Part shown: one piece after another, positions 29,503 to 61,680 of the stretch | Layout: each line of letters begins with the position of its first letter | How positions within the stretch are numbered: the first letter of the stretch is position 1 | Source: Anthoceros angustus | Taxonomy: Eukaryota; Plantae; Anthocerotophyta | Assembly: GCA_010909165.1 (NCBI GenBank) | Contig: MU008205.1 | Location: forward strand, 62,001-126,000 | DNA length: 64,000 bases | Reading direction: 5' to 3' | Translations under genes and position numbers: made by a program | Notes under the pieces: generated by a model | What the model was told of the DNA's origin: nothing | The model's database searches: none | What the model saw: only the letters and a program-made list of their open reading frames with translations

Positions 29503-30237
29503 CTAGGGGCACGCCTCTTTGAAGCGTCTAGTGGAATCCGTGGGGCCTAGTCCCTGTCTCCTGATGGAGGAGATGGAGTAGCCACGGTTAAAGGACTCCA
29601 GCTGGCTATCGCCATCGCACAACTCGTACGTAGATATCGGAGACGGAGCAGGAGATGGGGTGCAGTCGGGGCCCCACGGAACGGTCCTGAGCCCGGTGTT
29701 GTAGGCATTCACATTGCTGACATCGTAGGAGTCGACTCTGCCAGGCTCGATGTTGAATTCCGCCAGATTACACATCTCCTTGCTGACAGGAGTGCCAGGT
29801 CCAGCCCGTCGGCCACGCACTGCGCATTCAGGGAACGCCATATGGTTCCCCTACGGCCAGTAGCAGGAAGGAAATCGCAACACCTGTGATGCTCCCTTCA
29901 GCAAGTCGTACTCATAAATTTCGTTCCCTCCCGACTGCGCAGATGCTCGCACGCCTTCGGAGCAGATATTGTGGAGGGTGATGCTGCAACGTGGACAGAG
30001 ATTGAAATTGGGATCATAGCTCCAGCAGGATGAGGAGACACCACCACCTCCCGCGCACATGCTCGCACGCCTTCAGAGCAGTTATTGTGCAGGGTGACAC
30101 AGGAACCTGGACAGATACGAAAATTGGGATCAGAACTCCGACAACGTTTAGCAAATCACACGAATGACAACTAACCGTGCACTCATACTGCCCAGCAGGA
30201 GCAGGATGAGAAAACAACACCACGCTGCGAAAGCCAT
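29503..30237 (-). pseudogene. Thaumatin-like pseudogene copy 1
   Basis: LAEFNIEPGRVDSYDVSNVNAYN..RRFKEACP then TAG; C-terminus missing; duplicated exon-2 start. Confidence 0.75.
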
Positions 30238-31919
30238 TGCGAGACCTGCTCAAGTCTTGCACCTGGACATCTCAACTTCGTCCAGCATTCAATCTAGATA
30301 TAAATTATGGCTCCTCCGGTTCAAATGATGTGAGCACTCTAATCTTCCGGTACAACTACTACAACCCATAGTACTGTCCGGCCGGCCGGGCGTCGCGCCG
30401 TGGGGCTGCCGGTGGATTTGTCTGCAAATCAACTCCCTGCCTGCTTGGTGATAGGAGTTCACTAGTTTTAGAGTCAAAGCTTTTGTTTGGCGACAAAATA
30501 TTGAGTCAAATTACAAATTAGCCCCAAGCTTGAGGCGGTTTCCGTATCAGCCATGATCTTACAGGTTGCCCAGATCTGGGTTTCCGTGGCGTACAGGACT
30601 TTGTGGCTTTTCAATAGCTAAGTCACTGATGGGCAAGTTGAAGAGAAAATCAAACTTAGGAAGCAACAGAGGTGTGGTGAAATAATTTGGGGATCCATAG
30701 AGGCTCCGCATCAGTTTTCAAACTCAATCTCAGGTGGCACCATATGAGTTCTTAGCCAGTCAGCATCATAAAGGAGCGCTATTGTGGTTTAGTAGAATTG
30801 GAAGTCCACAAGAGGCCTTTTGTGGCCTTGCTTACTGGATCCACCACCTCAAGTTAAGGCTTGTTCTATTCCATAAGTACTCCAATTCACGCGACCTTCA
30901 GGGTCTCCCTTTGTCACACTGTATCAACATAGATTGAATCGCAACCTCAAAGTTTTATTTTACTGTCCAGGGCTTTGAGAGTGGAAAATTGGTTTAGTAG
31001 TTGGAACCCAAAGGCTTATTTCAGAATCTGTGAAATTGGGAGAGCTATTACTGTCATTGATGAACAGAATCATTCCTGGCAGATCAAAATGGGACGCGTG
31101 CACAGCAACGTTATGTTTTCTTCATGAACCCATGAACCAGTGTCTGCCTCTAGTTTTAAGGTGAAGCTGCTCTTGTTGTCTCGAGTGTTCAGGACTGGCC
31201 ATTCAACCACTGACTTGAGTGTCACTGATGGTGATGACTGCACTGGAAGCAAGATGAGTGCTCTTACCACATGACTTGCCAATGGCAAGTTGCCATGACT
31301 GCAACACCAATACCGAGAACCTTTGGCTTTGGCAGTGCATGTTCCATGGCACTCACTCAGGTCAGGACTCAGGCTTGACATTTTGATCGTATCCTATTAC
31401 ATCCAAGCTTCTGGTTACAGATATGGTTTGCATTTCTGAAGCCATTATCCTGAGCTGTGAAACAAATGAGAAGAATATCATGACGCCTGTAGATAGAAGA
31501 ATCAACTCCACCTACCTGTGGCCTGACTGTAATCAGGGCCAAGCAGGGCCACTACTGGCTGACAGGCTGGGTTGCCATGGCATCAAACGTCAGAATGGAT
31601 AACGCACGGATACTCGCATACTCGAATATGTACTTCGAACAAACAATGGTGGTATCAATGTTGTCGTCAAATGTCCAGTTGGACAAGGACGCATTTTATT
31701 CTGAAGAAAGGACGGTAGTAGGTACATACCGACTTGTCAATTCTGGAAGATTCCCTCGAAGCATGAACGGCCGCTGCACTGCCTGATGCTCTGCCGCTAA
31801 TGGACATTTGGAAGACTATATGCTCGCTGTGAGAAAGGTAAACCTACGTTCTCATTGCCCACGGACAGCCCAGGGTCAGGAATTGACGGGATTACCATCA
31901 CCGCGCGCAGTGCGTAGGA

Positions 31920-32658
31920 CTAGGGGCACGCCTCTTTGAAGCGTCTAGTGGAATCCGTGGGGCCTAGTCCCTGTCTCCTGATGGAGGAGATGGAGTAGCC
32001 ACGGTTAAAGGACTCCAGCTGGCTATCGCCATCGCACAACTCGTACGTAGATATCGGAGACGGAGCAGGAGATGGGGGTGCAGTCGGGGGCCCCCACGGG
32101 AACGGTCCTGAGCCCGGTGTTGTAGGCATTCACATTGCTGACATCGTAGGAGTCGACTCTGCCAGGCTCGATGTTGAATTCCGCCAGATTACACATCTCC
32201 TTGCTGACAGGAGTGCCAGGTCCAGCCCCGTCGGCCACGCACTGCGCATTCAGGGAACGCCATATGGTTCCCCACGGCCAGTAGCAGGAAGGAAATCGCA
32301 ACACCTGTGATGCTCCCTTCAGCAAGTCGTACTCATAAATTTCGTTCCCTCCCGACTGCGCAGATGCTCGCACGCCTTCGGAGCAGATATTGTGGAGGGT
32401 GATGCTGCAACGTGGACAGAGATTGAAATTGGGATCATAGCTCCAGCAGGATGAGGAGACACCACCACCTCCCGCGCACATGCTCGCACGCCTTCAGAGC
32501 AGTTATTGTGCAGGGTGACACAGGAACCTGGACAGATACGAAAATTGGGATCAGAACTCCGACAACGTTTAGCAAATCACACGAATGACAACTAACCGTG
32601 CACTCATACTGCCCAGCAGGAGCAGGATGAGAAAACAACACCACGCTGCGAAAGCCAT
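31920..32658 (-). pseudogene. Thaumatin-like pseudogene copy 2
   Basis: Same lesions as copy 1 (ACP-TAG, internal deletion, chimeric 5' part). Confidence 0.75.
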
Positions 32659-33990
32659 TGCGAGACCTGCTCAAGTCTTGCACCTGGACATCTCAACTTC
32701 GTCCAGCATTCAATCTAGATATAAATTATGGCTCCTCCGGTTCAAATGATGTGAGCACTCTAATCTTCCGGTACAACTACTACAACCCATAGTACTGTCC
32801 GGCCGGCCGGGCGTCGCGCCGTGGGGGCTGCCGGTGGGCGTTGTAGCTCGCGCGACAGTCTTGCAGTTCACCTTGCAAAAAGGGGATGCAAACAGCATGA
32901 TTTTTTTGTACAATCGGGGCGAGAAAGTCTCTCCTATTGAGGCTGGTAGGAAATGTGAATCACAGTGTTGAGGTTTCAAGGATCGCGACAGGTCTAGCTA
33001 TGGCACCTTCTCGGCAACCTTCTCGGCAAAAGATGTTACTAGTCAGTTTTTTCAGGTACTGAAAGGTAAGGTGTGAGGGGGACCGGGAGTGAGTATCTCC
33101 AGATGTGGACTGTGCTTCTTGGATGCAAGCAGTTGGGACGATCTGGTCAGGTTGGAAATCACCAATTGCTACGAGAAGGATGTGAAGGCATGCCATGAAG
33201 TGAACAACTAGATGATGCTGGTTCTGCATAGCATCATACAGTCAGTGGTCGGCGGCACAGTGTTGCTTTCGTCCACTGTTTCCAGTTCCACCAACTAAGA
33301 GAAGGAATTCAGTGTTGCGGTTAGATTCTGGAGAAGCTCGAAATTACTTGAAAGTACTCTGTTGGCATCTTCTGAGCATCTGCAAGTGCATGTCCCCTGT
33401 AGGTTTGCGACTACTTGTGTTGTTCTCTCAACTTATGCCCTTGTATTTTTGACGCAATGACTCAAGTCTTGGTTGTTCTCTCAACTTATGCCCTTGTATT
33501 TTTGACAAAATGAGTCAAGTCTTGGGCTGCATCTACAAAATCACTCCAGGGGCATGCTACTTCTTCCAAATCCTGCAAGCAAATATGCTCACCTAGCAGG
33601 TGCACTGTACTACATGAGCTCTGTTTGTTGCCTGTGGGGTTTGTCTTCGCATCAACTCCCCTGCCTTCTTGGTGATAGGAGTTCACTACTTCTGGAGCCA
33701 AATTTGTTTTAGCGAGAAAACTTTCAGAGTTAAATCTCCGTTGCTTGAGGTGGGTTCTTCATTGTACACGATCTTACGAGTTGCCCAAATCTGGGGTTTT
33801 CATGGAATACAGGATTTTGTGGCATTTCAAGAGGCTAAGTCACAAATGGACAAGTTGATGAGCAAAGTTGATCCTTGGCTGTTCCTCTCAGCTAATCGTC
33901 ACTTCCAAGGAAGACAAGATGCTTGCAGTGAAACAGGTCAACCTATTTCTCATTGCTCACTGACAGCCCAGTGTAAGGAATTGTTTAGGA

Positions 33991-34741
33991 TTACCCGTTT
34001 GACGGACAGAAGGTTACATGGTAGGATGTGCCGTGGGCGCACGTGAAGGTGGAAGTAGCGTCATCGTGGTTGTAGCTGGAGGCCGAGGGGCACGCGTCTT
34101 TGAAGCGGCGAGTGGAAGTCGTGGGGCCTAATCCTTGCGACCCGTCGGTGTTGATGCAGGAGTGGAAACCGCCATAAAAGCTCTCCAGCTGATTATCACC
34201 ATTGCAGAAGGCGGGGATATCGGAAATGGTGCACTGGATGGAGTTGCACTGGGGGGCGTCCACGGGACCGATCCTGAGCCCGATGTTGTAGGCATTCACA
34301 TTGCTGAGATCGTAGGAGTCGTCTCTGCCGGGAACGATGTTAAATTCCGCCACATTAGCCAGGTTCTTGTCGTTAGCGGTGCCAGGTTGACCACCATCGG
34401 GCACGCAGTTCTGCGTGATGGAATTCCATAAGGCTCCTGACGGCCAGTAGCAGGCAGGGAATTGCAACTCGTCCGAGTCCGCCGGTCCAATTATGTACTC
34501 ATAGATTACGTCCCCTGCCGACTGCGCGCATACTACCACGCCGTAGGAGCAGTGGTTCTGGAGCCTGATACTGCAACCTGACAGACCACATAAAACCTCC
34601 AACAACATCATGGCTCACAATCCATCGGGATAAAGAGCTCTACGAACATTACGGCTTAGCGAATCAGATGAACGACAACTAACCGTGCACGGGTACTGCA
34701 ACAAGAAGAATGAGGAGACAACACCACGCTACGAGAGCCAT
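33991..34741 (-). CDS. Secreted thaumatin-like (PR-5) protein, 2 exons
   Basis: Signal MALVAWCCLLILLVAVPVHG, intron, then IRLQNHCSY..AEFNI..DSYDLSNVNAYN..FKDACPSASSYNHDDATSTFTC..YHVTFCP; TATA-like run at ~34810. Confidence 0.88.
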
Positions 34742-40229: not shown

Positions 40230-40379
40230 GGGCGCCGGCATGCCGCCCCATGTCCCGTGAGAGGCGGGGAGGGCCGGCATGCCACGCCCCTCTCCTCCGA
40301 TATGGATGTGGTGCCGGCATGCCGGTGCCCCTCCCTTGGTGTTATAGCAATGACATTCCAACCGCATATGGCCACAGAT

Positions 40380-40767
40380 GGGGAGCGATCGCAGCGCCTA
40401 TGTTGGATGAAGATTATTTGAGCAAACTGCAGAATCGCGATGCAAAAAGGTGGTTCCGTAAAGCCTTGTGAAGCTCGAGAACTTGAGGCTCGCATCATTT
40501 CGACTCTCCATGCATGATCCGAATGTGGATGAGGCTGGGCTAACTATTTGGCGCATGTGATAGCAAAAGGACGTATAGAGGAAGGAGTCCTCCTTTCTCT
40601 CGTATGATTGACCCATCGAATGCGTGGATATCGAAGCTGGGCTGGATCAAGTTTCGCTGGCACGTGATGGGAGTCTTAGGTGGCAATCATACATATGCCG
40701 CCATGAAGCACCTTGGCGACATATCGCCAGGAAGGCAAGGTTCCAATGGATGGAGGCCCATGTATTA
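40380..40767 (+). pseudogene. ParB/Srx-like N-terminal part of the MTase gene
   Basis: VDEA..LAHVIAKG, MGVLGGNHTYAAMKHL, FQWMEAHVL, ending at the TATTA junction. Confidence 0.55.
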
Positions 40768-41027
40768 GGGAACGACGCCGGAGGCCACGGCCGAGAACGG
40801 TCGAGGCCGCTAGGCCGAGACCGTTTCTCTACTGCGGCGCCCATGAGTGTTCGCTCGGCATAAGGGAGCGAGGTCAGCCGACGCCGCCACCGACTTGTAA
40901 TCGAGGCGAGTCGAGGTCTGCATCTTTAGAATTGTTGCCTTGTGCAACCAAGTTAGAAGTCTTTTTCTCTCTCTCGTAGTTTTCACCTTCGCACTTCGTA
41001 GTTTTCACACACTTTACGCTTGTCTTT

Positions 41028-42760
41028 TCACACTTTGGGATTTATCTTTCTAACTTTCTTCTCGGCGTTGAAGGGTGTACACCGCGATTTCCTGCCTTCT
41101 TCGTAATAATACTTCTTTCTTTGTTCATTGTACGGTCCAGATAGAAAGTTAATCATTTCGAAAATTTCGTCCAAACGGGAATATTTCTGCAGGCAATGGT
41201 AAATGTCAGACATCGTACATATTAAATTTCACCACTGTAAATATGATATACTAACCTCAAATAGTGCAAACAACTCCTTTTGATTCTTCGATAACTACAA
41301 ACAAAAAACGGAGTTAATATTTTACCTCCATTTCAAGTCGAAGAAGATCTTGCTCAGAATACCTTTCTCACTAATGTGAGGCAATGGCTGTGAAGATTTC
41401 CCACACTACGGAAATGTGATTGAACGCTACGCAAAGAAATATCAACCTTAAATTTGCATATTTGGTAAATACCAATATTAATATTTTCCTTGTTTATCTG
41501 AAATTATTCTGAACTAACCTTTTGAATGTTTTTGTAGTTTCGGATCTTCCATCGAGTCAACAAGTCATGGTTTTAGCTCCTTATTTTCAATGGCTGATAT
41601 TTCTACATTACCAAAACACAAATTTCATTTACTACATAAAGCGATTCAAATAAACTATTAAAAACAATATAAACCGATAAAACTTACTTTTGGATCTCCA
41701 TGTCTTTGCTCTAGGGTTCTGTCGACCCATCTTCATTAATTGTCTTGGATCTTTGAGGCTATGTTCCCAAATGGGAACATATCTATTTTAAAATCTTGGA
41801 AGACTTGTGGATACTGAAAGTTATCCATCCATTTTCCAAAGTCGACAAATTCCTTCGACGGTCCATACGTTGGTGCATTATCTTCTGACTCCTCTTTTTT
41901 CCTCTTTTTGTCCTTTGGAAAAACAGTAATTAGTAAGTTATATACTAGTTACAAATATACTAATTATTAATTACAAATATACAATAGCAATTACCTGATG
42001 AGATATGGCTGTGTTGTTGATTTTGTCATCCATTGCTTCAATTTTCTCCTTAATTTTCTTAGCTGCAGCAACTTGTTCAGCAGCACTCTGTAAACAAATA
42101 TATTAGTACTTATTTGTGTAAACAAATACATATAATACTAAGTGTTGTTGTTTACCTCAAAATCGATGAATTGAGATCGATGTCCATTAAACCTCGGACA
42201 GAGTCATTGTTTCCAACTCTAATTGAGCCGTTGTTCGGAGATTCTTCTTAATATCCTGTAACCATATACAACTAAAGTTGCGAGACCTATATTTGTCTAT
42301 AGTCCTAGAGAAGTTGCGACCAAGTCTTTACCTTTTTAATTTTTTCGAGTTGGCACACGCAAAGGAGTCAAGTCCTTTTGTCCATTGATGTGAACATAGT
42401 GTGCTCCGTGAGTACTGTAACAAAGATATAGAGTTAGAAATGTTGACAGTAGATTCAATTGAGATAATTGTAATGTAGTACCTTTCTCAACTATCTTTCG
42501 TATCTCAATGAGAGGATTTCAACTTCACTGTCATCATATCCTGATCCCCATGGGTGGAACATGGTTGTTCGATCGCCAGTTAAGGTTTGTTGGGTCTCTA
42601 CTATTGTGGTCGCTCGAGAAACCATTTTAGCCATGGATTCATCAACCACAAAATGGATTTGGTGAGGTAGAAATTATCATTACCTTCTTGGATGTCGACC
42701 ATTTCATCGTTGCTCATTCTCGGATGCCATTCGAAAAAGCAACGCTAATGTACACAAAAC
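41028..42760 (-). pseudogene. Uncharacterised multi-exon partner gene of the Crypton-like element (copy 1)
   Basis: Exons conserved with 59.5-61.6 kb, e.g. PTYGPSKEFVDFGKWMDNFQYP vs PTYGPSLEFTEFGKWMSNFQYP, IGESKASCFHSL-like and QKYSRLDE; shared splice positions. Confidence 0.55.
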
Positions 42761-42999
42761 AACGCTCAAACTTGAACAAGTTGGGTACATACAAGCGTTG
42801 TTACGCACTGTAATCGTTTGTTCGTTGGAGTAACTTGCCGGTATCTTTGTGTTGTGTGGATCGTGTGGGCATCGGGTCGAGGTATGCTTGCGCAAGAACT
42901 ATTAGAGTCACGTGGGCAAGACACATAAGAAGGAGTCACCAAAACCCAAGCACGTAGACATACCGAAGCAAAAGACATGGTTAGCTTATCTTCAGCACG

Positions 43000-45900
43000 G
43001 GCAGGCCGCGGGTGGTACCGGTCGTTACACTCGATGTTGGGCTCCGTGAGGGACCCATCGATGCCGAAGACCCGCACTCGCCAAGACGGACTATTGCCTT
43101 TGTCTGGATTGAGTGTGGCCAAGGTCGAGGTATGCGAATGAGCGTTGGGAGAGGCGGAGAGCAACTGCACAAAAGAAGGTACAAAGGGTGTTAGCCCAAA
43201 ACCCAGAAGTACAGACGCCCAAATACGCAGAAATCAAAAGGAGATGAAACCCCTCAGCAGAAGGGAAAAGTGAAGTACCGGCCGATCTTTAGATATTGTT
43301 GGGCGCCACGAAGATCGATGATGCTTGCTTGAACACCGCCAAGATGTTGAAGACTCGCTCCGACAAATACGAAAGGCAGAAGCAAGCAAAGCAGCGGAGC
43401 ATAGCACTCCAAAACTCCAACTAATTCGAGAACGCTGAGCTCCGGACGCCGATCGCAAAGATGCAGTGAAAAAGGATCGATTGAACGCCGAAATGGAGGG
43501 GACATCCGTCGAGACCAAACGCGAGGCGCGTAACCCGACAAGCGGCGCCAAGGAGGGCGCAATTGGCGTGGGAGTCTCCAGCAGTGAGTTTGCAACAAAA
43601 AGTCCGAAATCAGTCAAGAAAATAAGCCACTGCAACTGTGAAGCGGACAAAAGTTAATGGACTACCTTTAAAGCCGGATGTCTTCACCACCATACCTTCA
43701 CAAGATGTCCAGATTGGCTGCAACTTCAAATCGCAGCGCCCGCTACTGAGTTGCACCGCATGAAAAACCCACATCGAAACAAAATTTTCGACTATCATCA
43801 CGGATGGCGTGACGGCGGACCAAGCTCAATCAGGGGGCAATGGCCAGCGCTACACCGGTCGAAGTGAGAAAGTGGGCGGACGAACGCGTGAGGGGGTAGT
43901 GGTTTAAATAGGGATTAGGGTTCCGGATGCTTCTGGCGGAGGCCTACGTCTATTTCGACCCGGAGTTTCGCTTTACCGCCGCTTCGAGGTTCGGGTTAGG
44001 TTGGTAAGGTTTGGTTAGGTTTGGTGAGCTTAACTTAGGTTTGAAGTGTCATGGCGAATCTAACCTAGAAAGGTTTGGAGTTAGGTTTGGATTTGTGTTT
44101 GGTAAATTCAAAGAGGTCCGTAGATGAGAGTGGCGGCTGAGAGAGAAGGGCTAGGGTTTCTTTGGCTATATAAGGTCTTACTTCAGTCCAACGTCTTTTC
44201 GATTGTAGGCAAGGCCAAGGGTTCTAGCGCCTTTGAACAGCGCCTCTCAAAGATAGGGGTTATTCTCCATTAAAGGGTTTGGGTCCCTAAAGACCAAAAA
44301 TGACCCCAAAACGGGCCAAAATGCATCATCTTTAGCAAAACCACTCTTAGACATGTCAAAGACATTGACCATGTTATTTTCTCGTGAATACTTACGCTAA
44401 GGTCAAGAAGGTTCATGGATTTCACCTTCACAAGGAAGGGATTTCAAGGATTTTAACAGTGCTAGGAATCCTAAACACCTCTTTCGCAGATAGTACTTCC
44501 TAGGTGGTGAACAGAGGCAAACCAAACAAAATTAGTCCAAGAAGCCAAACTACGGACGTCAAAACCAACACGCAAAAGTAGCACCGAAGTCGAAGAAGAA
44601 TCACGGACGCCCGAATTGTGAGAGAACATTAACCGATAGCTTGATCATGGCCATCTCGAGAGGACCAAACTACGACTCTAAAAGTAGCGCTGACGTCTGC
44701 ACTTTGAGTACACAACCCGGATCTCCATTGTTAGAGTGAAAACATAGAAGGAATTGGAACAATGCGCCGGACGCTCGCACATTGGCGCGAGTCTAAAAGC
44801 ACCGGACGTCCGCGATTTTCTGAGACCCCAATCTTGTGGGCGCCCATGAGATGGAAATGGTGGAGTGGATTGGACGTCCGACATCTATATTTATTGTTTG
44901 TCTTCTAGAAATATCCGCTGGGATAGGTGCATAGACTCAATGGCAAGAACTCAAGGTTAAGCACTCCAGGATGGGGTGCTTGACTGGTGCTTGAGACCAT
45001 GCATGGCTAGGATGCTTGCTTGGGCGCTTTGACTTTGCTAAGAATATGCACTCAAATTAGAACTAGGATGGCTTGCTTGTTTTGGCGCTTTGAAAACTTT
45101 GTAACAACTCCATCAAAGCAACCTAGAGGCGTATCAATACTAGGATGGAGTGTTGATTTTTAGTGGTTTGAAAAATTTGTAAATCATCCCGTATCTAGGC
45201 GTAAAGTCATGAATATTATTTTTGAAAATCATTTGTTGGTTGATGTTATATTCCACATTCGCTTTGTATACAACATGTTAAACCTTTTGGCCTTACTCTA
45301 TGTGATTCGACTTGCGGTGGATCTCTTTGATTGGTGCAAATGTCAAGCTCATTCGAGTTTGATGCACGTATAGATGCATAGGCCTTGGTTTCTAGATGAG
45401 CTACATTTTCCAAAATTACATGTATGATGGTGGTTTCTAATGGCCAACCTTTTGAAGACGACAATGTTTCACAATGTTTTGCGGAGAAGCGAAAATAAAT
45501 AGAATAGATGATTTTTCCTTGAGTAATGAAAGCACATCGGATGCGGTCGAACAAGCATAAGAGAGCATCTGCACGCCCTGCGAGCCCTAGTGAGAGCCGG
45601 TAGTGTCGAAGAGGGCTGGTCGCCGGGGTTTTGACCAAATGGCTGAGTATTTGTGAGGCTCGAAGGAGGACCTATCTATACCTTGTAGCGCCCACTACGG
45701 TACATGTTGGGTTTAGAGGCGAACTATAGCTTTTGAGATTTTGAATTTAAGATCGACTTGCTCCATGTGCCACCCATGGATAGATTAAGGTTGAAAGCGA
45801 TGCGGACTTGACAAGAAGAAATGTAAGCTACGAAGAGTTTGATCAAGAGCGGTTGAGGAGGCCTCACCATCCTTTACCTTGTCAATTCTGCGAGGCCAAT

Positions 45901-47300
45901 CTGCGGATCTAAGTGCGGCTTATCTCTCGGCGGAGGGGCCGTCGGGGCGGTATACTGCCGTGCAGGATTGCTCGAATCACGGGGTTTGAAAAGAGAATTG
46001 ATGTGAGTGTTGGTGCGGTGGCAAGTGTGCACAAGCAACTTGAACGAAAGTGCTTGCCTACACAAGTATTGACGCAACCCTCTCCAAACCCGGTATTGCA
46101 CCTCTTTGAGTATAAGCGCGGACGTTCGGTGCACTCTTGGAGCATAAGTCACCATCCGCCACTTGGTACAAAGTGTGTCCGCTATTTGTGTGACGGTGGG
46201 CATTAGGTCTTCCTTGGGCTCGGATGCATGGCATGGGTTCGCAAATCACTGAAAACAGTGAAATGAGACATGTGCATTTCTGGATGGTTGGGGCCAAAAT
46301 GGGGTTCGGAGGCAAACCCCTATGCTGAGAAACACTGTTTTTGTGTCCGAGCTCTTTATATGTCCGTGAGGAGTCTGTTGTTGTTTACGCTCAGTTTGAA
46401 GGCGTGCTTTTATGTTACGTTAGGGTCTTCCTCCGAAGGCTAAGGTTTCTCGGATGCAAAGGCGACATGGTCATGTTTTGCCAAACGCCGCCTCGAAGGT
46501 TTCTGCCTCTCAAAATGCCGCCTAGGTGAAAGTTCGCTACCTTTGTTCTGTCAGTGTTGTGTTTTGCGCGTCATTGCTCCTTCTTCGTTACTACTTGCTC
46601 CTTTCTTTACTGTTTGGTTGAGCATGTGTTTTTAGTCTTTAAGTCCTTCTCACGCTTTTCTTCAGAGTCCAAGGTGTTTTCGAGGCTTTGCTCATGAGAG
46701 TTTTAGTTTTCGCTCATGGTTCTTTTCAGCTCTGTCCCAAGGATAGGCCTTTTTGTAGTCATCAAGTCCAAGGTGGTCAAGCCTTGCTAGGTCAAGGTTT
46801 GTCGAAGTTTTTGGGCCAAGGTTCTATCATCCTCTTAAAAGGTTAAGGCCATTTCACGTCCTGTTCAAACGCCAAGGTTTCTGTAAAGTTTCTTTTCAAT
46901 GCCAAGGTCGTTTTTCTGCTGTGCTTGAAGGTTGGTTTTCGAAGGCCAAGAGGTCCCTAGGTCCGAAGGTGAGGGTGTCTTTGCTCCCGAGGTCCAAGTT
47001 GTTTATCCGAAGGCTTTTGTTGTCCAATTTGTTGGTTTTTGTCGCTTGCCAGTATGCTGGAACGCCCGCGGCGTGTGATTGCTTGCTCACAGTCATTACA
47101 TTTAGTCGACGTGCTAGTATTAGCGCGGCCTTAAGCGCCAATGCTTTTGAGCGCTAGTGTCTTCAGGTCTAGTACTTCTCAGCGCTAGCGCTTTTAGTTC
47201 TTGTGCTTTTTAGCGCTTGGTTGCCAGCGCTAGTGCTTTAAAGTGGTAGTGTTTTCAGGTTAGTGTGTTTTAGCTCTAGATTGTGCAGTTGGTTTTGTGT
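43000..47300. mobile_element. Unassigned insertion(s) inside Crypton copy 1, absent from copy 2
   Basis: The gap between the two element genes is ~6 kb here versus ~1 kb in copy 2; contains tagggtt/ttaggttt-rich LTR-like sequence. Boundaries approximate. Confidence 0.4.
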
Positions 47301-49070
47301 TTTTGTTGTTGCAGTTATCAGTTTGGAGTTTTGTTCCTTTGTTGCATACTATGATTTGCATGTTGCTGTCTGTCTGCTTCTTGCAAACATCTTCGTGCTT
47401 GCGAACTTATGTTTCTTTGGTGTGTTTTTGTTTTGATCATCTTGGTGGAAGGCGTTGAGATGTATCGTATCGATGCAGACGTAGAACACAGTATCATCGG
47501 TCTGTTGCAAACAGGTGTCCCAAACTGACAGCCCGTTGTGGTCGAGTTCTTAAATGTTTGTTTTTTAGTGTTAATTTGTTATGTTTTATAGGTTGGTTTT
47601 TGTGCTCGATTGTTTTGTGCTCTGGTGTGTCCCCGATGCATCATTGTAATTATTCATACTGTTTCTTTTCTTGTGTGCATTTTGTTCAGTTTTCTCAATG
47701 CTTCTTTTTGCTCATGTTATCTCGCTCTTGTTTTTGTATTGTCTCACTTGCATGCATGTGTTATTTGTCGTGTTTACGATTTGATTGTTGTAACTGTAAG
47801 TCCAGAAGAATAGTTGGTAAGGGGTAGGACGTCTTTTTTTGTTTGGAACAAAGAATTAAAGCGATTTGGACTAGGACTTAAGCATGCTATGATTTGTTTT
47901 GTGTTTTCCGGAAGCTTGGTGTTTATTTCATATTTCTTTTCCTTATCTAGTTGTGTGACTTTCTATCATGTCCTGTACAGGTTCAATTTGTTTTATTGTT
48001 TTGGAGTTTTGATTGTGTTTGGTTGTTTTTTTTCAGGTGCATCATTATGTCTCTTAGCGAAGAAGAGATTTGGAACAAGATCTGATTCCGTTCTGATTCC
48101 GTCACTCGCCAACTGTGGTATATTGCATGTCTATCAATCGTTTTTGTGTTTATGGCTCTCTGGCTGTGGCATGTTTACAGGTCTCTTTGTGGTTGCTTCT
48201 ATTGGTACATGTGTTATGTTTGTGTTATATATTGTTGTCTGACCGCTCCACATGTCCTTTCTGACTTGTGCATGTCTGCATCCTGCCTATTGTCTGATTG
48301 ATGTTTGTCTTATACACAGGCTTCTGCACTGTTGTGTTATCTTCCCCTTGCTGTCTTTTTTATGGTAATTTTTTGTTTTTGTTCGTGTGCGCTTACTTTG
48401 GTTTTCCCACTGGTGAGTGTGTTGTGTCTGACTATCGTCTCCCACTTGTTGCGTCTGACTGTCTGATTGTGTATGTGTATGTTTGTTTTGATGGGGCCTC
48501 AGTTGTGGCTGAATGCACGGCTGAAAGCATGTGTAACAATCTGTTTAAGTTTTTCTCTTATATTAGTTCATTTGTATTAACTACTTTGGCAACTCTTTTG
48601 TATGTAGGACTTGAATTTCAAGTTTGAAGGCTGTGGCAACATCTTTACTTTGGTCTGTTGGGGAATGAAAAAAAGTTTTTGCTGAATGGTTTGTATGGAT
48701 GTTTTTTCTGTGTGGGTTTCTTTTGGGGCTTTTGCTCTTTGCACTTACATCTCACTCGCCAAGGCATTTTTTTTGTTTCAGGAAGGTTGTGGGTATTTGT
48801 TCTCTCTAACATGGACGTATCTGATCTCTCTAACATAAAGCAGAGGGGATTTACAAGAATAACAATGTATAGATTTAAGGAGTTTTCTGTGTTACATCTC
48901 CCACAGTCCTTTTCTTCTCTAAGATTGTCTTATAATCAATTGTCAGACCTTCCAGCAGGTTTTCGTCTGGAAGTCGCAAACACAATGTAAGTGTCAAGAT
49001 TGTCAATTGATTCTCTGTTTAGTATACAGGTTTTTTTTGGATCAATTTGACGTTTTTGTGGTTATTGCAG

Positions 49071-52000
49071 ATGGCTCCCAAAAGAAAACCCACAGGTCCT
49101 GCTGGACCAGGAAAGAAACAAGGATCCCTGGCTGAAGTTATGGCCAAGCCATACACAAGACAACGTGTCAAATCTGCAGTTCTCCACACTGCAACTCATC
49201 CACTGCAGGATGATGGTAAAGTTGATGGTGTCTTGGTGCACAGCGAAGGAACTTATTTAGTTCCAAAAAAAGACATTCCCAAACCGCCAAGGCACTTCTC
49301 ATCCAAGAAGGATGCTCGACGGCATTGAGTTTGTGAAGAGGAGAAGGGTGGACACTGACTGTGGCATTGGTTGAAGGTCCTCTTGCGAGATTACTAACTA
49401 TGTCCCAAAGGTCCGAGAGAGGGGTCCAGTGGGGAGAATGATTTCTTGATAACCGACGATCCCATGGTTGTGAGGCCGCCAAAGCCTGAGTCTAGAGATT
49501 TGTGTGTGTGGTTGAACAGATGCTTTATGGCGCTTTTCCATGCCTGTGGTTCCCCGACCGAGTCATCCCGATCAAGAAGTGCTTGATATGTTTTGAGAGG
49601 CTAAAGTGTGATGATCCCAAGATGACTTTGCCATGGGTATGGAGGAAATTGATGATGAAGCAATTTTAGAGAGCGGGATTTGACCCAATAGTCCCGAGGG
49701 AGCCGTGAATGATGCTTTGAGTGGTGGGAGGATAGGTCCAAACGGTAATAACGTGTCAAGTCGTCTGGCCTTTATGAAAGTGAGTGTCAGGGATGGGATA
49801 CCGTTGAGGATATCCTCACAAGGATCTAAATCTTATTCGATATCCTTTTTCCATCAAGTTCGAATCGAAGGACAACAGATTTTCTCGTAAACGTAAGTGA
49901 TGTTTTTTTTGATTTTGATAGTTCGACTTCTTTCACATGACCGATTTCGATCTTCTGCAGTTGATGTCTTTCTTTCGTGGTTTTAACCGAATTTTAACAA
50001 GGAAGTGCATCTGAACCAAAGCCGCTTGGTATGTTCCTGATCAACATGTTTCATGGAATTTTCCATGGGTCCCGGGTTGCGCCCATGAAAATCGAAGGAC
50101 CTTGGGATTGTGTCATGTCGAAAAGAGGTGAAGTTGATTGATGATGATGAGCGATTCTTTCACACAGAGATCATCAATGCTCATTTGGGCGGGGCTCAAA
50201 AAGGTAATATTGTTGGTTTTGGGGTGCATTTTGATTGTTCATTTATGGTTTTAAACGGAGCCTTATGCCTATATTGTTTGGTGTGTGCATATTTTTGCAT
50301 GACCAGTTTGGAGTTCGAGGTGGTGAAGAGTTACATAACCCGCTCATTAGGGACTTCTCGCTCAGCAGATTCAAAGTGTGGACCTTTTGTTCAAGATGTT
50401 TTGATGTTTTGATGTTTTGATGTTTTGATGTTTTGATGTTTTGATGTATCAGATGAGCTCCTTCATTTGCGGTATGAAGAACTTCAAAAATTACAAAGTG
50501 GACATGAAGAATTACCAGAGTGAGCATTTCCGCCAAAAAGGTCAAGATCTACGGATGTTATCGAAACTTTTAAAGTCAAGTATTGATCACTCTCCCAAGT
50601 GGTGCATAGCGACAAAATTTGTCAATTCGGGGTTTCTTCAATTCAACCATTGATAACCCAAGATCAAATGTAAGTTTTGTTGTTATTGGGCTTAAGTTTT
50701 GTGGTTTGTATTTAACCGCTTTGTTTTTTGGCTAGGCTTGGTATGCAAAACTCGTGTTTCAAAAAGGAATGTTGTCAAGGTTCATGAAGACCATGATGAA
50801 GTGGGCTTGTTGGCTATTACACCAATAAGAGCTGCCGTGTAACGATGATTACACGCTTGACGATGGCTCGGTGCCTTGATCTTTGGGAGAAGTGTGACCG
50901 CCATAAACGGATGCATTTCAAGGTAATATGTTTTGAAAGCTTGTGACATTTGAGTCCTTTGTATGTTCCTTCGACGCTCGATGTTTTGCGATATGACCGT
51001 CCGTCAAGCAAAACAGTACCGCAGAAGAGTCCTTGTTCGGTGAACGCGATCCTATCAGGAGCTTTTGAACGAAGAACTTAATCGGATGCAGGATGATTTA
51101 AGGGGTGTTCTTCCGTCATCCTCAATGTGACTCAAATTGTATTTTCTAGTCACAAGATCACTTGCAAGTGCAACAGGTTAACAATGTAAGTGTTTGAGAT
51201 TTGTTGCAAGTATAGGGACTTATCAAAACTCGTGTCCCGACTTGTTTTTTTTGTGTCTTAGGTCTCCTCCACTCGTTCATTCATCATGAAAGGCATCTTT
51301 GAACAATGTCAAGACGAATCGAGTTTTCCGCACCATGTGGTCCATCGTGTCTCAAGTTCGTTGGTATTGTCAGTTCCTTTGTTGTAGCCGCCATGTTGGA
51401 TCTGTTTTAATCATCTTGGTTTATTCTTGGCGGTGGGAGGCTGTGGCGTTTTGGTTGCAAACATACCTCGAAAGCGATGGCCAAGGCATCCGGATGGATA
51501 CCAGCACAACATGGGTGTTCTAGTGAAATTCCATATGTTGACAAGGTTGATTCTTTGTTTGTTGTTGTTTTCATTCTTTTGGAGTTTCGATTATGTGTTC
51601 TTCTTGGCGGTTGTGAATCCTGCGACTAGTGGAAACATTCCCTCATTTCAACATTGATACAGCTCTGAGGGAAGTCGATGCAGTGGCCCCTTTGTTGGAG
51701 GGCATTGTGCAGAGTGAGTGTGATCAGTCATCTGAAGTTAACCAGGACAAAAATGTGGCTGTAGTAGCACCTCTGGATATCGCATTGCAACATGTGACTG
51801 CAAATGGAAATGGAAGTGGCTTTGAGCAGCGGCTTGCTGAGATCTCCCGAGTACGGGAATTGGAGTATGATAGACTGAAAGAAACTGGAGTTTCAACGGC
51901 AAAAGGATTTGGAGGCACTTATAGAGAGACAGGCGTAGCGCTTGAATTACGAGTCTCTAAGCAAAGAGAGAAAGCCCTTGAGATTCAGAGGCGAGAAATG

Positions 52001-52371
52001 TGGAGAGGAGACAAGAGCACATTAAGCATCAAGAGAAACTCAAGCAGCAGCAGAAAGAGCAGCAAGAGGTTCGAAGATTGCAGTGAAAGACAGGAGAAGA
52101 ATGTGCCTCGAGATATTTGCATCGCTATCTCGCGAAAATCCCGGATTGGTAAGTTTTCTTATGCTCTTTATTAATCGCAGTAGATTGAAAATCAATGGTT
52201 GTGTTTTATTGGGTTGTGACCTTGCAGGAAGACGGACAATTTCGTCCAAGTCCTCAGCTTCATCAATTGGTTGCCAATTATGATAATGTTGTACAAGTGC
52301 CAATCAAGCCAAGTGGTCGGGAAAATTACATTTTCAATCTGTATAATTGTACAGTGAATTTCCCTAAATAA
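49071..52371 (+). pseudogene. DUF3504/Crypton-type tyrosine recombinase, multi-exon, frameshifted
   Basis: MAPKRKP start; RGFNRIL; QFGVRGGEELH (catalytic R, ~50316); KNFKNYK; WY; TNKSCRVTMITRL (50821, K in place of H in HxxR); VT(G)HK; YDR (~50992); terminal FNLYNCTVNFPK*. Confidence 0.75.
50395..50447 (+). repeat. (GATGTTTT)6+ intronic tandem repeat
   Basis: Six full 8-bp units plus a partial unit. Confidence 0.9.
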
Positions 52372-52914
52372 GGTAAGTATCATTGCTTAAGTCTTTGTTC
52401 TGACTATTGCCAGGGTTTTCTAGTATCAGCGTAATTACGGTTTGGGTGCTGATTTTTGTTTTGTTTGTAGGTTTCATTGTTGTTGAAGCAGAGTTCAATC
52501 TATTCAGGTATTTACTCTTCATTAGTTGAATTTGTATTTCATGCCATTCGATATACAGAAACTCGCAAAGAAAAGGTTTCTTTGTTGGTTTTTGTATATC
52601 CCGGATCCGCATGAATATTATTTAACAGAAAATGTTTTGTCGATTAGCGATTTTGGTGGGATTTCTAGAATGAGCTTCTACTAGACGCACTGGTATTCAC
52701 TTGCCATTTTTCTACTCTAGTGCTCTATTTTCTACCTTGATGTTAGATCATTTTCACCCAACTTGGCATGTTTACTACTATATTGTAATGAATTTTACTA
52801 TATCGGGTAAAACAATGACCAAAAGGTCAATTCTCTCTAAAATTTACACTACCGAAAAAAAAAATCAACTAGGCGATCGAGGCCCCTGACGAGGCCGCAA
52901 TCAGACGCTTATTA

Positions 52915-55105: not shown

Positions 55106-55350
55106 CGATGAAATCGGACAAAACCATATGCCATTCGGATGCTTGCGGCCAAAACCGATGAATGAAAAAAGGCGCTTTTGTGTATGCGATGAAATCGGAC
55201 AAAACCATATTGTATGCCATTCGGATGCTGCGGCCAAAACGATGAATGAAAAAAGGCTTTTGTATGCGATGAAATCGGACAAAACCATCTTGTATGCCAT
55301 TCGGATGCTTGCGGCCAAAACGATGAATGAAAAAGGCGGCTTTTGTCGTG
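55106..55350. repeat. Three ~80-bp tandem units ending in TTTTGTCGTG
   Basis: cgatgaaatcggacaaaaccat..gccattcggatgc..ggccaaaac..gatgaatgaaaaa at 55106, 55187 and 55267. Confidence 0.9.
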
Positions 55351-55419
55351 GAGCGCAAGCGGTCGAGGTTTTACAAGGCGACATTATATTCAGCCCCTTC
55401 AAATATTAGCATGTTATGC

Positions 55420-56030
55420 CTTTCTGATGCTAGCACATCCTTGATAACATGATGAGGTCGCTTGGTGAACGACCTCGCACACTTCAAATGTTCCAAGGGA
55501 GCAAGGTTAGTCCACATGGACCTCAACCTATGAGCCCTCGAACCAAATTGAGCTGCATCCAATAGAAGCTCTTGACCCAACACTCCTCGGATCATGCCGA
55601 ATTCCTTATGAACTTGCTTCTTCACGCTCATGCATGCTGGCACATTCTCCAACATGTATCCACAAGGCCTTTCTTGCCCTTTCTAGATCAAGCGCAAGAT
55701 CCTCATCAGGTCATAGAACAATGCCGTTCGTGGATCCTTCAAACCTTGACCCTATCCTGCAGAGGATAGTCCTTGACACTCCCAACTGCGATGACAAGGT
55801 CCACCGCCCCAAGACAACTCAAATGGGACAACCCTATCATGCGAACATCCATCCAGCTCGTAACCCTTCACCGACTCCCACGCCGGAGGTTAGGTACTCC
55901 CCATCAAGTCCTTACGCTCGGACACAATCCTTGCTTTTGGATCCGGGTCACAATGCACGATCTTCGCACTTTGATGCCACACTTTACTGCTTCAAGCCGT
56001 GCGATGCCTCCAAAGAGTTCCACCATCACT
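55420..56030 (-). pseudogene. N-terminal half of the retroelement C5 cytosine methyltransferase
   Basis: VMVELFGGI (I), DLVIA.WECQGLSSAG..GLKDPRTALFYDLMRIL (IV), YMLENVP (VI), LDAAQFGSRAHRLRSMWTNL (VIII); contains stops and frameshifts. Confidence 0.8.
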
Positions 56031-56490: not shown

Positions 56491-57859
56491 AAGACATCAA
56501 ATGTCTCGTGATCAAAGGACCAAGCAAAGGTAAAAGGTGAAGTCACCGTTTGGTTTGAATGAAACCTTCAGCTTGTACCTTGTCACCCCAACACATGCTC
56601 CGTGGTCCCAAATGGTCCGGATCTTCCACTTGGTTTCCTTCAACCTTTCTTGGTGGAGACCAACGCCTTCACTCTTCTTCCAACGATCACCTACTGCGGC
56701 TCTGTCAATCAACACCTCCTTGGTGCGAATCCATTGATTTCAATGTGCCTCCCGATTGTTGACCAAAGCCACCCCACTGCAGATTCCGCTTCCACGAGAT
56801 GCTTGTTCGAGGTCAAGAATGACATCATTGCTACCGCCATGGCAAATCTTGGACACTTGCTTCGCCTTCAAGGGTTGTCAACATCCGCCGAGTCAAACCC
56901 CGACTTCCTTCACGCCAACCCCATGTCTTGTAGGTGAAACATGGCATCTCCGAAGCTTTTGTGCCATCGCTCGTGTCTACGCATGGGTTTCTCCACATCG
57001 CCCACTGACTTTGATGTTGCTCCCACAGCTGTTCTCGCTGGCAATGGCTCAAACGACTTTGGCATCTTGGCATAGGTTCGGGAAGAGGATCCCAAGCTTC
57101 CTTCCGTGTCTTCCGCCTGCGTGTCAAGACATCCTCTTCCTCCTCGAGCTATCTTCTCGTAGTCGAGGTTTGTACAAAGCGTCCGCTCACAAGACATCAA
57201 ATATGCGCATCGGTGACCAAGCGGTGTACCTCGACAAAGGTGAAGTCTTGTTCTTGGTTTGAATGAAACCTTCAGCTTGTGTCACCCCAACACATGCTCC
57301 GTGGTCCCGGTGAGTCGGATCTTCCACTTGGTTTCCTTCAACCTTTCTTGGTGGAGACCAACGCTTCCTTCACTCTTCTTCCAACGATCACCTCGGTGTC
57401 AATCAACACCCTCCTTGGTGCGAATCCATTGATTTCAATGTGCCTCTCGATTGTTGACCAAAGCCACCCCCCTTACATTCCGCTTTTCCACGAGATGCTT
57501 GGTTGGAGGAGGTCGAGACATCATTGCTACTGTTGTGGCAAATCTTGGACACTTGCTTCGTCTTCAAGGGTTGTCAACATCCATGAGTCAAACCCACGAC
57601 TTCCTTCACGCTCAACCCCATGTCTTGTAGGTGAAACATGGCATCTCCGAAGCTTTTGTGCCATCGTCTCGTCGATCTGCGCATGGGTTTCTCCACATCG
57701 CCCACTGGACTTTGATGTTGCTCCCGTTGCTCCTGTTGGCAATGGCTCAAGCGACTTTGGCATCTTGGCATAGGTTCGGGAAGAGGATCCGAAGCTTCCT
57801 TCCGTGTCTTCCGCTGGTGTCAAGACATCCTCTTCTTCCTCGAGCTATCTTCTCGTAGT
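56491..57859. repeat. ~700-bp diverged tandem duplication of the retroelement protease region
   Basis: 56491-57163 resembles 57191-57859; both end in cgagctatcttctcgtagt. Confidence 0.85.
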
Positions 57860-59519
57860 GCGGAGGTTTCTTCCCTTGCCCTTGATCCGTCACCGCCATG
57901 TATCCAAGCTTGTGCTCATCTTCTTCGTCCTCGATGATGAGCTGCTCTCCTTGATCTTCGCCTTCGCACCAACTTCTCCATGCAGGCGTACAATGAGCTG
58001 CCCATCGCCTTCTTTGATGCTTCCCGTTTCTTTTGTCCATGGACTTCACGGTGCCTCCTCCACGGTGCCTTTGCTCTTGATTTTGTGGATGAGGCATAGA
58101 TGCATTGGCCGGGTTGCGAGCAAACTGTAGGCCGCAATCGGATGCTTCTCCCAACATGCCGCTTCATTGTGCCTGCAGTACTCCCACCCAGGGCATGGCT
58201 CCTCACCCTTGACTCCTCCGAATGCATGCTCGCACTCATGAGGGAATGGTCCATCTCGGCACCTCACGCAGGCTCGTCACTTGGGTGTGTGGGTTGTCTC
58301 GCCGAGCTCCTCCACTCGACCTCCGCGTCGGTCATGTCGTCCACCACTCCTACTTCAGGCCGGAGTAATCACTTGCAACAAAGACGAAAAGTGTCACGGC
58401 CCTATCTTGTCGACCATCTCGTACACTTCCTTGAGGGTGTAGTGTTGCCCTTCGTCTTGTGCACCACTTGTTGCACCTTCATGCGCAGTGATATGGCAAT
58501 GCATGCAAGTACTTCTCTGTACCGACCGGTCACTCATGATCTTGGTGTCACGTACTAACCGGTCGATTCTTGATAAGCCATCTTCAGCCTCCTCGACTTC
58601 ATCTTGAAGTGTGTCACCGAGATCTTCTCATCCATGCTTGAAACTCCACCGAAGATGTCAAACATCTCTTGATGGGATCGCCCACTAGCGCCGCCTGCTC
58701 CGACCGGTTCCTTCGAGCTTGAACGCTACTCATCGTCCTCCACGTGCTCAACAACCTCGCCTTGTGCTCGCGATAGCACGCCAATGCTTCATCCCCAAGT
58801 ACCGGGCAGGACGGGAATCGCTTCGGTATCCGGTCTTCAATTCCATCTCCGCACACCGTACTTCTCGATGAAGTCCTCCGGTGGCAAGGTGCCGCCTGTG
58901 AACAACTCCATTCGATCCTTGTCTCCTCCCATCTTGGCGACTCCTAGAGACAAGTCCTCCTCGCAGTCGCTTTCACTAAGTTGTCCCAGCAGCACCAACG
59001 TGTCTTGTGTGTTGCCACTCACAGATCCTTCAAAGATTGTTGATTGAGTCGCTGCGTTCCTCCGTGATAAAATCCTAGCAGTAGGATTGTGGAGCATGCA
59101 TCTAACCCATGATGCTACGCAAGATATGTTCTTCGTTAATTAGTTCAACAAAAGGTACACAAGGTATGTTTTAAGGTGGTGCAGGGTGTCCGTTCATGAA
59201 GGGGCACACCCTTTCGTAGTGACCTAACCCTCAGACTGAACCAGATTACGCAGAGCGATTAGAACGGAGGCGTCGCCGAACGGCCGAGGCCGGAGGCCGA
59301 GACCGTTCTAGGCCGTGCGCCCCGCGCGTCCGTTCCTGGCGTAAGGGAGCGCCGAGTCCGGGCCGAGACGCGCCTAACTCGATCGCGCATCGAGTGAGCC
59401 GAGGTCTGGAACTCTATAGACTTGGTGCCTAAACCACCCGGCTTATATGTCATTTCTCTCTCTCTTACGGTCATTTTTCTACATCATTTCGTTTTTGAAT
59501 CCTTTTACACAATAAAAGC

Positions 59520-61680
59520 ATTACCTTTCCACAAGGTAATTCAAATGGTTTTGGTAAATTCTACTCATCTTCTATTGGAGTAGATGGAGTGTAAAATGGT
59601 TCGTCTCTTGAATAGTACTTTTGAGCTGCTGATTGTATGGTCGAGATAAATGTATAATCATTTGAATATTTCATCCAAGCGAGAATATTTCTGCAATTTA
59701 AACCATTGTCGAATTCATATATAAAACATATTTGTTTTTAACTTTAGTACTCACCTCAAAGAGTGAAAACAACTCGCTTTGATTCTCCGATAACTACAAA
59801 CAAAAAGTAAAAGTAATTAGTCATTTACCTCCATTTCAATTCGGAGAAGATCTTTCTTTGCATATACCTTTTCGACAAGCGTTAAACACGTCTGTGAAGA
59901 TTCCCACATCGGAAATGTGATCGTATGTTCAAGAAACATAAACATTAGAATTCATCTGGAATGCAAGCGGATATTACCTTTCAAACGATGTACCTTTTGA
60001 ATATTTTCGTTGTCTCCGGTTCTTCCATGAGAGACAACAAGTCTCGTTTTCAACTCCTTATTTTCAATTGCTGCCCTATCTCGCATTCAATGCATATTAC
60101 ATATTACATAGAATTATATGTAATGAAAATAAGAAAGAGAAAGAGAAGTTATCGCTTACTTGCTTGGATCTCTGTCCGCTCGAATGTTGGGTTGGACCCA
60201 TCTTCATTCAAGATGGGCGCTTGCTCTTTTAGACTATGCTCCCAAATTGCGAATACTTATCTTTAAAGTCTTGAAAAAGTGGTGGATATTGAAAATTGCT
60301 CATCCACTTTCCAAACTCGGTGAACTCAAGTGACGGCCCGTAAGTTGGTCCATCCTCCTGAAGTCATCAATTTTCTCTTTTTGCCCGATCAAAACCAAAA
60401 TCATTACTTTCTTAAACCAAAATCATATTAATCCAAATTAAATACAAAATACATTTTGTAATTGATTGGAGATGGCGCATTGTCAATGTTGTTGTCAATC
60501 TATCGACTTTGTCCTTTATATTTTTAGCGAATTTTTTTTCCAAAGATTCAGAATGCCAAGTTAAAAGAAGGTAAATGTGAAGAAGCAAAGAAGGTATGAA
60601 TGTTAATTTGATTACCTCGATCTTGCTGGATTGAACTTTGATATCCCTCCAACATTGTTTGCATTGAAATCGGTGTCCATTAAACCTTTCCACAAGTGTA
60701 TGCGTTTCCAGCTCAATTGAGTCGTTGTTCAAGGTTCTTTTTATATCCCGCAGATAAATTTAGGGTTAAGATTTTGGATTTGAGCATACTTAGATCAAGT
60801 TTATGAAATTAAGAAAAGTGCTTACCTTCTTTATCTTATTCAATCAAGGTGCATCTCGCAAAGATGCTTAAGGTCTTGTTTGTCCATCACAGAGAACATT
60901 GTGTGCTCGCAGAGGACAAACCCACGGGTTTTGTTAGACTCGACCAACGAGAATATACAGGACTAACGACAATCATTTTTCCCGAATACCTTTTTCTACG
61001 ATCTTTCGATCTCCGGTGGTGGTTCAAACTCTGCGTTAGCGTCATATCCTGGATCCCCATGGGTGGGAAGTAATTTGTCTGAATGGCGCTCACAGGGTGG
61101 CGTCATGTGAGTTCTGTCTGCAGGGGGTTGACACGATAGATATTAGTAAAAGTAAAAGTAAAAGTAAAAGCAAAGTAAGAAACGTATAATACAAGTAGCA
61201 ATCAAGTACCTTCTTGGATTTGAAAATCGTTATTGCTTTCGTTGTCGATTCCATCCCGATTCAAATGAAAAGCCATCGAACACCGATCATAGTGGAGCCA
61301 CCACAACTGACCGCACAAGACGCATTGCGCCAAGAAAACAAAGAACGGGTTGAGCAAGGTATTACTTACGTCACGACACGTCGCTTCACGCGAAACCAAT
61401 TGTCCGCAAGATCCCGCAGAATTTTGTTAAAAGCATTCGTCATCACCAATCCGAATTGTTGGAAGCAACAAGCGCGAATATGTTCTCAAACTCGCACAAG
61501 ATTCATGTTTTACGCAGGATAGCTATGTTCGAAAAGACTTCAAGAACGAGACTCTTTTTGCTGCGAACCCCTTACCTCTGCCAACCCAATCATGCATTAG
61601 TTTCCCGGCACAACCTCCGTGACACGCCGTCAAATGAGCCCATAGAATTATTGTGACGGACGATTTACACTAGGATGGCG
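59520..61680 (-). pseudogene. Uncharacterised partner gene of the Crypton-like element (copy 2)
   Basis: Exons homologous to 41.0-42.8 kb, including NNDSIELETHTLVERFNGHRFQCKQC. Boundaries approximate. Confidence 0.55.

Follow-up and report, generated by a model that had tools for sequence, protein, structure and literature searches.

A decayed, probably CryptonA-like relic and a diverged second copy in DNA of Anthoceros angustus

Within a window of 64,000 nucleotides of the land plant Anthoceros angustus (positions 62,001 to 126,000 of contig MU008205.1, assembly GCA_010909165.1; all coordinates below are those of the window), the interval 40768-52914 is probably a decayed, non-autonomous relic of the Crypton kind, whose single recognisable gene would be of the CryptonA/DUF3504 type, and a second, diverged relic begins at about 59262. 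Together the two form a repeated family with a sharp 5' boundary, a terminal direct repeat and shared introns, and both copies are broken. A first-pass annotation, made from the sequence alone, had called the interval a Crypton-like transposon; what stands of this description is a bounded, repeated unit, a 5' end adjacent to ATTA and a match to CryptonA found by eye, whereas an intact recombinase and a proof of mobility do not.

The Pfam gene content of the window places the region 40,763-52,914 in genuine land-plant nuclear DNA, in agreement with the land-plant setting first proposed: PPR, LRR-RLK, BURP, thaumatin and peroxidase genes are all present on the contig. The following were recognised by Pfam.

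6313-8241, minus strand: PPR protein
13780-15006: BURP-domain protein
17114-18748: LRR ectodomain
33994-34611, minus strand: thaumatin
elsewhere in the window: class III peroxidase

A kinase open reading frame at 18813-20030 matched plant RLK/Pelle kinases only, at no more than 52% identity, and its matches include the liverwort Calypogeia and, of the mosses, Sphagnum and Ceratodon. The window is also rich in local tandem duplications, and its other tandem duplicates are 97-99% identical.

The outline of the element and of its second copy is given by six features.

40763-40767, plus strand: left TATTA, a 5-bp direct repeat on the target side; copy 2 has ATTA (59258-59261) at the corresponding place
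40768-42557, plus strand: 5' terminal module, non-coding, common to copy 2 (59262-61066; blastn HSPs 68-76% identical)
42558-48931: 6.4-kb middle specific to copy 1, without a counterpart in copy 2
52873-52897, plus strand: 3' subterminal repeat with two CGAGGCC motifs, resembling 40797-40823 in direct orientation
52910-52914, plus strand: right TATTA, the element-side end, from sequence reading
59262-64000, plus strand: copy 2, in the same orientation as copy 1 and about 70% identical to it in nucleotides, cut by the end of the window near box I

Copy 2 provides the strongest argument that the unit is discrete and that its 5' end is correctly placed, give or take about 10 bp. By self-comparison, the copies align in two collinear blocks (40795-42557 with 59278-61066, and 48932-50205 with 62534-63853), and a strict local alignment starts at 40779 in copy 1 and at 59265 in copy 2, which is 11 nt past ATTA in the former and 3 nt past ATTA in the latter. 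Since this boundary adjoins ATTA in both copies and the flanks upstream of it show no relationship to each other, the repeat is a discrete unit. The last bases of the 5' flank are GATTA in copy 2 and TATTA in copy 1, a comparison that draws on one extra copy and one end. These are the two copies seen in the window, 18.5 kb apart, and where copy 1 has its 6.4-kb middle, copy 2 carries a different, unrelated 1.5 kb. With the alignment of the N-terminal exon as query, no further copies were found in metagenomes, viral contigs or prokaryotic genomes, collections in which the source genome is absent, and a degenerate DNA pattern had no match in metagenomes. ORFs of the window looked up by exact match gave nothing either, so that the source genome is missing from the protein collections too, which accounts for the lack of matches in these outside searches.

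As had been noted at the outset, TATTA is directly repeated at both ends and terminal inverted repeats are absent, the two 200-nt ends giving an inverted local score of 15 against a shuffle mean of 15.7. A repeat search returned no long direct repeats, LTRs or split repeats, and LTR and TIR readings are thus ruled out by end comparison and repeat search, leaving a short direct repeat at both ends without TIRs or LTRs, as expected of a Crypton-like element. A Helitron was likewise rejected, because the ends read GGGAAC... and ...GACGCT, and not 5' TC and 3' CTRR with a 3' hairpin and insertion between A and T.

Within the 5' terminal module, GAGGCC occurs at 40781 and again at 40802, and the stretch 42534-42557 stands out as a strongly conserved island. 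Mismatches between the copies over this 1.8 kb fall on the three codon positions as 241/225/209, that is, without 3-periodicity, from which we conclude that the module is non-coding; a second gene inside it was rejected on the same ground. The two-gene architecture originally suggested could not be upheld, as checks of open stretches, families and periodicity found no second gene in 40768-49000.

The 3' end is seen once, in copy 1, and a TATTA alone within 1 kb of the end of the gene is expected by chance. The exact end would lie at 52914, a placement suggested by a subterminal repeat common to both ends together with a dyad over the restored site. Half of the CGAGGCC sites in the window (four of eight) are subterminal on the plus strand (40802, 52878, 52890 and 59285), and the direct alignment of the 5' and 3' subterminal segments has a score of 21, equalled by 5 of 300 shuffles. 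Removal of the element yields GCCCAT-GTATTA-ATGGGC, in which 6-bp inverted arms surround a 6-bp spacer, which is how a recombinase core site is laid out; among random joins, 2.1% have arms of at least 6. The statistics for the subterminal repeat and for the dyad, with p of about 0.02 each, are both post hoc. An empty site, predicted to read GCCCATGTATTAATGGGC, was not found.

It had further been claimed that deleting 40768-52914 rejoins a single interrupted gene, and that this shows real mobility. The frame in question is indeed open across the join, for just 75 codons (52 + 23), which is ordinary for these flanks: when positions and frames within them are taken at random, 28% are open for at least 70 codons, and the join can be read through in a second frame too. 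Family searches with the flank ORFs found nothing, and a homologue search with the right-flank ORF was negative over the length range that it covered. Because the rejoined ORF does no better than randomly chosen sites and is without a homologue, the argument for mobility from an interrupted gene fails, and we rejected this ORF as evidence of insertion.

The gene itself occupies the 3' part of copy 1.

48932-48986, plus strand: conserved non-coding leader exon, from the two-copy alignment
48987-49070, plus strand: GT-AG intron of 84 nt, present in both copies
49071-50205, plus strand: N-terminal coding part of the putative recombinase gene, common to copy 2 (62671-63853)
49893-49960, plus strand: GT-AG intron of 68 nt, conserved in both copies
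50670-50735, plus strand: GT-AG intron of 66 nt, cleanly joining two frame-2 blocks; past the end of copy 2
51617-52368, plus strand: possible C-terminal extension, open for 185 codons and then, in a last stretch with FNLYNCTVNF at its end, for 60

Past purifying selection acted on this gene. In the first coding exon, copies 1 and 2 are 86% identical as protein and 80% as nucleotides, their mismatches are distributed 13/8/38 over the codon positions, and dN/dS is 0.057 with a dS of 1.28. A ratio this low at such a dS indicates that both copies are relics from lineages that were long kept functional, and the introns common to the two favour a DNA element over an RNA intermediate. Decay has since affected both. 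At 49320-49365, where copy 2 keeps an open frame, copy 1 differs from it by indels of +3, -2 and +1; further on, copy 1 has in-frame stops at 50521, 50571, 50607 and 50944; and two frameshifts, at about 50525 and at 50804/5 (frame 2 to frame 0), are needed to read through 50.3-51.0 kb. Copy 2 is broken by a shift from frame 0 to frame 1 near 63800-63830. With its frameshifts and in-frame stops, the gene of copy 1 is a pseudogene; the multi-exon recombinase of the first-pass annotation thus has real introns, but its motifs are split by frameshifts and stops as well. The segment 51617-52368 is possibly a C-terminal extension of the same gene; family searches matched nothing in it, and a homologue search with its 185-aa stretch was negative over the length range that it covered.

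Judged by its sequence blocks, the gene probably, if not provably, encodes a tyrosine recombinase of the CryptonA/DUF3504 type.

50304-50363, plus strand, frame 2: box I, Q-FGVRGGEE-...-DFSL, with the putative first catalytic Arg (FGVRGGEE at 50307-50330)
50452-50669, plus strand, frame 0 to the stop at 50521 and then frame 2: Lys-loop, C-x-x... and F-F/Y...P blocks
50736-50922, plus strand: W-Y block (frame 2), then box II, TNKSCR...TRL...RHK (frame 0), with the 50804/5 frameshift between them
50977-51003, plus strand: Tyr block, L-D-V-L-R-Y-D-R-P, presumed catalytic Tyr at 50992 (YDR at 50992-51000)

These blocks were compared by eye, after the motifs had been seen, with the CryptonA/DUF3504 cores that Kojima & Jurka 2011 give in their Additional file 4. 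In box I, 10 of 19 residues equal those of CryA2_SK, with one gap. The Lys-loop, the C-P-V-like C block and the F-Y-L-P-like F-F/Y...P block are in register with CryA2_SK and CryA1_LG, with the K-V-K stretch in CryptonA order and a C...P block of 14 residues in both, and the distance from W to TN, 30 residues, is equal to that in CryptonA. Box II (TNKSCR at 50821-50838 and His at 50902, plus strand) has about 15 ungapped identities in 50 positions to CryA1_LG, TRL among them; the position of the box II His is occupied by Lys in copy 1, the second Arg is kept, and the later His follows this Arg at 22 residues as compared with 23 in CryptonA. In the Tyr block, 4 of 9 residues equal CryA1_LG in register, and the pattern around the Tyr is x-V-x-x-Y-x-R-x-S. 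Between the His and Tyr blocks there are 63 extra nt (50914-50976, with a stop inside), and the His-Tyr distance is canonical (9) only if these are removed. By eye, then, the R, R and Y of the R-H-R-Y tetrad are in CryptonA register, with Lys in place of His, and about eight collinear blocks match those of the CryptonA cores and equal them in length; for the two best blocks taken jointly, we roughly estimate a chance of order 1e-2 to 1e-3 once the search space is allowed for. The G-H (not G-W) and T-N-x-S motifs are closer to CryptonA than to CryptonF, I, S or DIRS. Of the motifs listed in the first-pass annotation, FGVRGGEE, TNKSCR, YDR and FNLYNCTVNF (52333-52362) are present on the plus strand, while for VT(G)HK frame 0 reads D-R-H-K-R.

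All family searches were made on single exon pieces, which at 20-60 residues each have low power. When about 40 pieces free of stops, taken from the element and from its flanks, were run against Pfam, NCBIfam and PHROGs, nothing relevant was matched, and PF12012 matched none of the single exon pieces (20-60 aa, low power) even at E up to 10. A phmmer search of single pieces against the PDB returned nothing, the 48-aa box II piece had one spurious repeat protein among 1.84 billion representatives by phmmer and one chance match to phages by tblastn, and hhalign, comparing the pieces of box I and of box II with aligned XerD, XerC, lambda Int and Cre, gave probabilities of at most 0.1. This uniform lack of matches at the exon level, in profile, PDB, BLAST and hhalign tests alike, as well as a box II without His, would be natural if the repeated element or gene encoded something other than a tyrosine recombinase and the likeness of motifs were fortuitous. 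One would then have to explain the run of equal-length, collinear CryptonA-matching blocks, of which the best two have the low chance estimated above, while pieces this short give profile searches little power; we hold such a coincidence to be decidedly improbable. One could also speculate that the two copies are tandemly duplicated, pseudogenised host genes, for instance domesticated DUF3504-like genes, that were never mobile, with TATTA and the dyad coincidental. DUF3504 genes are often domesticated (PMC3212892), a low dN/dS is compatible with host gene and transposon alike, and the existence of just two copies, close together and in one orientation, in a window full of local tandem duplications, points the same way. 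This account is nevertheless unlikely in our view, as homology stops sharply by ATTA in both copies, with 1.8 kb of non-coding sequence aligning inside and nothing aligning in the flanks, a subterminal repeat is common to the 5' and 3' ends, and both copies are broken and, with a dS of 1.28, diverged much earlier than the nearly identical tandem duplicates of the window.

That the locus is what remains of a retrotransposon with a tyrosine recombinase, of the DIRS, Ngaro or PAT-like sort, whose reverse transcriptase was lost, seems highly improbable. DIRS-type elements with a recombinase do exist in green plants and algae (PMC3537659, PMC3212892), and the 6.4-kb middle could hide decayed genes; Pfam, however, matched no RT, RNase H, methyltransferase or DDE transposase in about 30 stop-free stretches of the decayed sequence at 40.7-52.4 kb. 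Inverted terminal repeats and split direct repeats are absent, spliceosomal introns are conserved within the gene, and box II with its G-H resembles CryptonA and not the H-S-x-R...G-R-W of DIRS.

For the Crypton-kind relic that we prefer, we infer the identity of the recombinase, its binding sites and a circular intermediate, and the element may have moved as follows. A recombinase would have been expressed from the gene with introns that lies in the 3' third, and it would have attached to the subterminal repeats, which contain GAGGCC, at either end, after which recombination of the two TATTA ends could have released a circle. A second site-specific exchange, this time between the circle and a (T)ATTA in the genome, might then have inserted it; at this locus the genomic ATTA would have lain within the short dyad described above. 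Insertion of this type would leave one TATTA on each side and no true target-site duplication.

Cryptons are rare and poorly bounded, and Chlamydomonas is, to our knowledge, the only host in which Crypton activity has been seen. The animal CryptonA/DUF3504 (PF12012) cores (Kojima & Jurka 2011, PMC3212892) resemble the gene described here in block order, spacing and many residues, with G-x-R-G-x-x-E, W-Y...G...L...M-K, TN-x-S-x-R-x-T-x-x-T-R-L, G/R-H and x-Y-x-R as common motifs, and in animal CryptonA as here TIRs are absent and the recombinase is the sole recognisable gene. The element differs from them in its length (12.1 kb versus 2-6 kb), in its several short introns and possible C-terminal extension, where animal Cryptons have no introns, in its terminal direct repeat, where animal CryptonA is reported to lack terminal repeats, and in its land-plant host and the Lys at the box II His position of copy 1. 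Described Cryptons in general are 1.8-6 kb long with 5-6-bp terminal repeats, and the present element is two to four times as long as they are.

DUF3504/CryptonA has been described as an opisthokont family that Glomeromycota acquired by transfer, and the Glomhoppers are DUF3504-encoding CryptonA elements of these fungi, which are symbionts of land plants (PMC13465315, 2026). Compared by description, Glomhoppers share with the element a CryptonA type outside animals, copies that are mostly truncated or intron-bearing, and a location in repeat-rich DNA; unlike it, they are fungal, with a single ORF and an intact catalytic set. CryptonF-1_cRei of Chlamydomonas reinhardtii, which ends in CACCG and targets CAYCG, and for which integration and excision have been observed (PMC9977147), is a Crypton of the green lineage with a 5-bp end motif identical or nearly identical to its target, as TATTA is here, but it is active, has a chlorophyte host and encodes a CryptonF recombinase (...S-H-x-x-R..., G-R-W). 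The CryptonS and CryptonF elements of oomycetes and fungi likewise have 5-6-bp, often AT-rich terminal repeats (TATGG, ATTATC, TAACTA), and they differ in belonging to other recombinase groups, in their accessory domains (GCR1_C, C48 peptidase) and in their size of 1.8-6 kb. Starships, with their DUF3435 'captain', are likewise large, mobilised by a recombinase and variable in their interior between conserved ends, but they are fungal, measure tens to hundreds of kb and use another recombinase family, and in the present element no cargo genes were recognised.

In the literature we found no curated report of a CryptonA-type element in a land plant, and the latest survey consulted (2026), which treats the type as opisthokont, makes no reference to plants. 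It is tempting to extend the reading to a land-plant lineage that has long been host to a diversified family of large, intron-bearing CryptonA/DUF3504 elements (dS between subfamilies of about 1.3), with subterminal direct repeats, a replaceable interior and a possible link to Glomhoppers by horizontal transfer, although we regard this as speculative and unlikely. A CryptonA family resident in land plants would, if true, widen the host range, add an element type that lies outside the models of plant repeat annotation pipelines and, with its readable ends and subterminal repeats, offer a case for studying site choice by the recombinase. As both copies are dead, the value of the locus is that of a pointer to the family genome-wide, and it is there that what is probably a CryptonA-like relic needs confirmation.

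The middle of copy 1 has features of its own. Its 10 open stretches had no match in Pfam, a 2.5-kb stretch at 46.3-48.8 kb is 44-47% T, and a 17-nt inverted pair lies at 42548/45763.

Within the 5' module, the non-coding stretch at the head of copy 1 that is matched in copy 2, conservation is highest in the island CCCATGGGTGG, and it is at this island that the alignment of the two copies ends. The same sequence is found again, inverted, 3.2 kb onward, within the middle of copy 1 that has no counterpart in copy 2, a recurrence that could mark the boundary of a segment that is nested or rearranged.

Occurrences of the conserved island CCCATGGGTGG
42547-42557, forward strand, end of the 5' module in copy 1
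45770-45780, reverse strand, middle of copy 1
61056-61066, forward strand, end of the 5' module in copy 2

The middle of copy 1 also holds 2.5 kb (46300-48800) with 44-47% T on the forward strand and an AT skew of -0.35, a T-rich stretch in which neither repeat structure nor coding signal is present. Further along, a perfect microsatellite, (GATGTTTT)x6.6, occupies 50395-50447, between box I (the recombinase block with the first catalytic Arg) and the following recombinase block, and probably lies inside an intron.

The flank to the left of the element has a forward-strand open frame (40544-40765) that ends at the exact insertion point. This frame contains G-G-N-H-T-Y-A-A-M-K-H-L-G, reminiscent of a ParB/sulfiredoxin motif, and its sole match is a weak, non-significant one to a ParB-like PHROG (E 0.56). 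Just upstream of the insertion site, at 40234-40328, three palindromic GCCGGCATGCC motifs are spaced by ~40 nt; similar to these are the G-G-A-G-M-P-coding repeats at 37.9-38.4 kb.

Between copies 1 and 2, an open stretch on the reverse strand (55374-55682) carries E-N-V and Q-F-G-S-R-A-H-R-L-R, which resemble motifs VI and VIII of C5 DNA methyltransferases; the stretch has no Pfam match. Also between the two copies are a tandem repeat of an 80-bp unit (55106-55346, 2.9 copies) and two adjoining 640-bp direct repeats, 88% identical (56533-57869).

Elsewhere in the window there are two very recent tandem duplications, 22091-27439 (unit 2.7 kb, 97.7% identity) and 27984-32837 (2.4 kb, 99%), containing peroxidase-like and thaumatin-like genes. 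The thaumatin-like paralogues at 20.1-22.0 kb and 33.1-34.8 kb are older. The N-terminal part of the BURP-domain gene contains, at 13961-14188, a coding tandem repeat with a 42-nt unit, P-Y-P-W-P-D-I-D...
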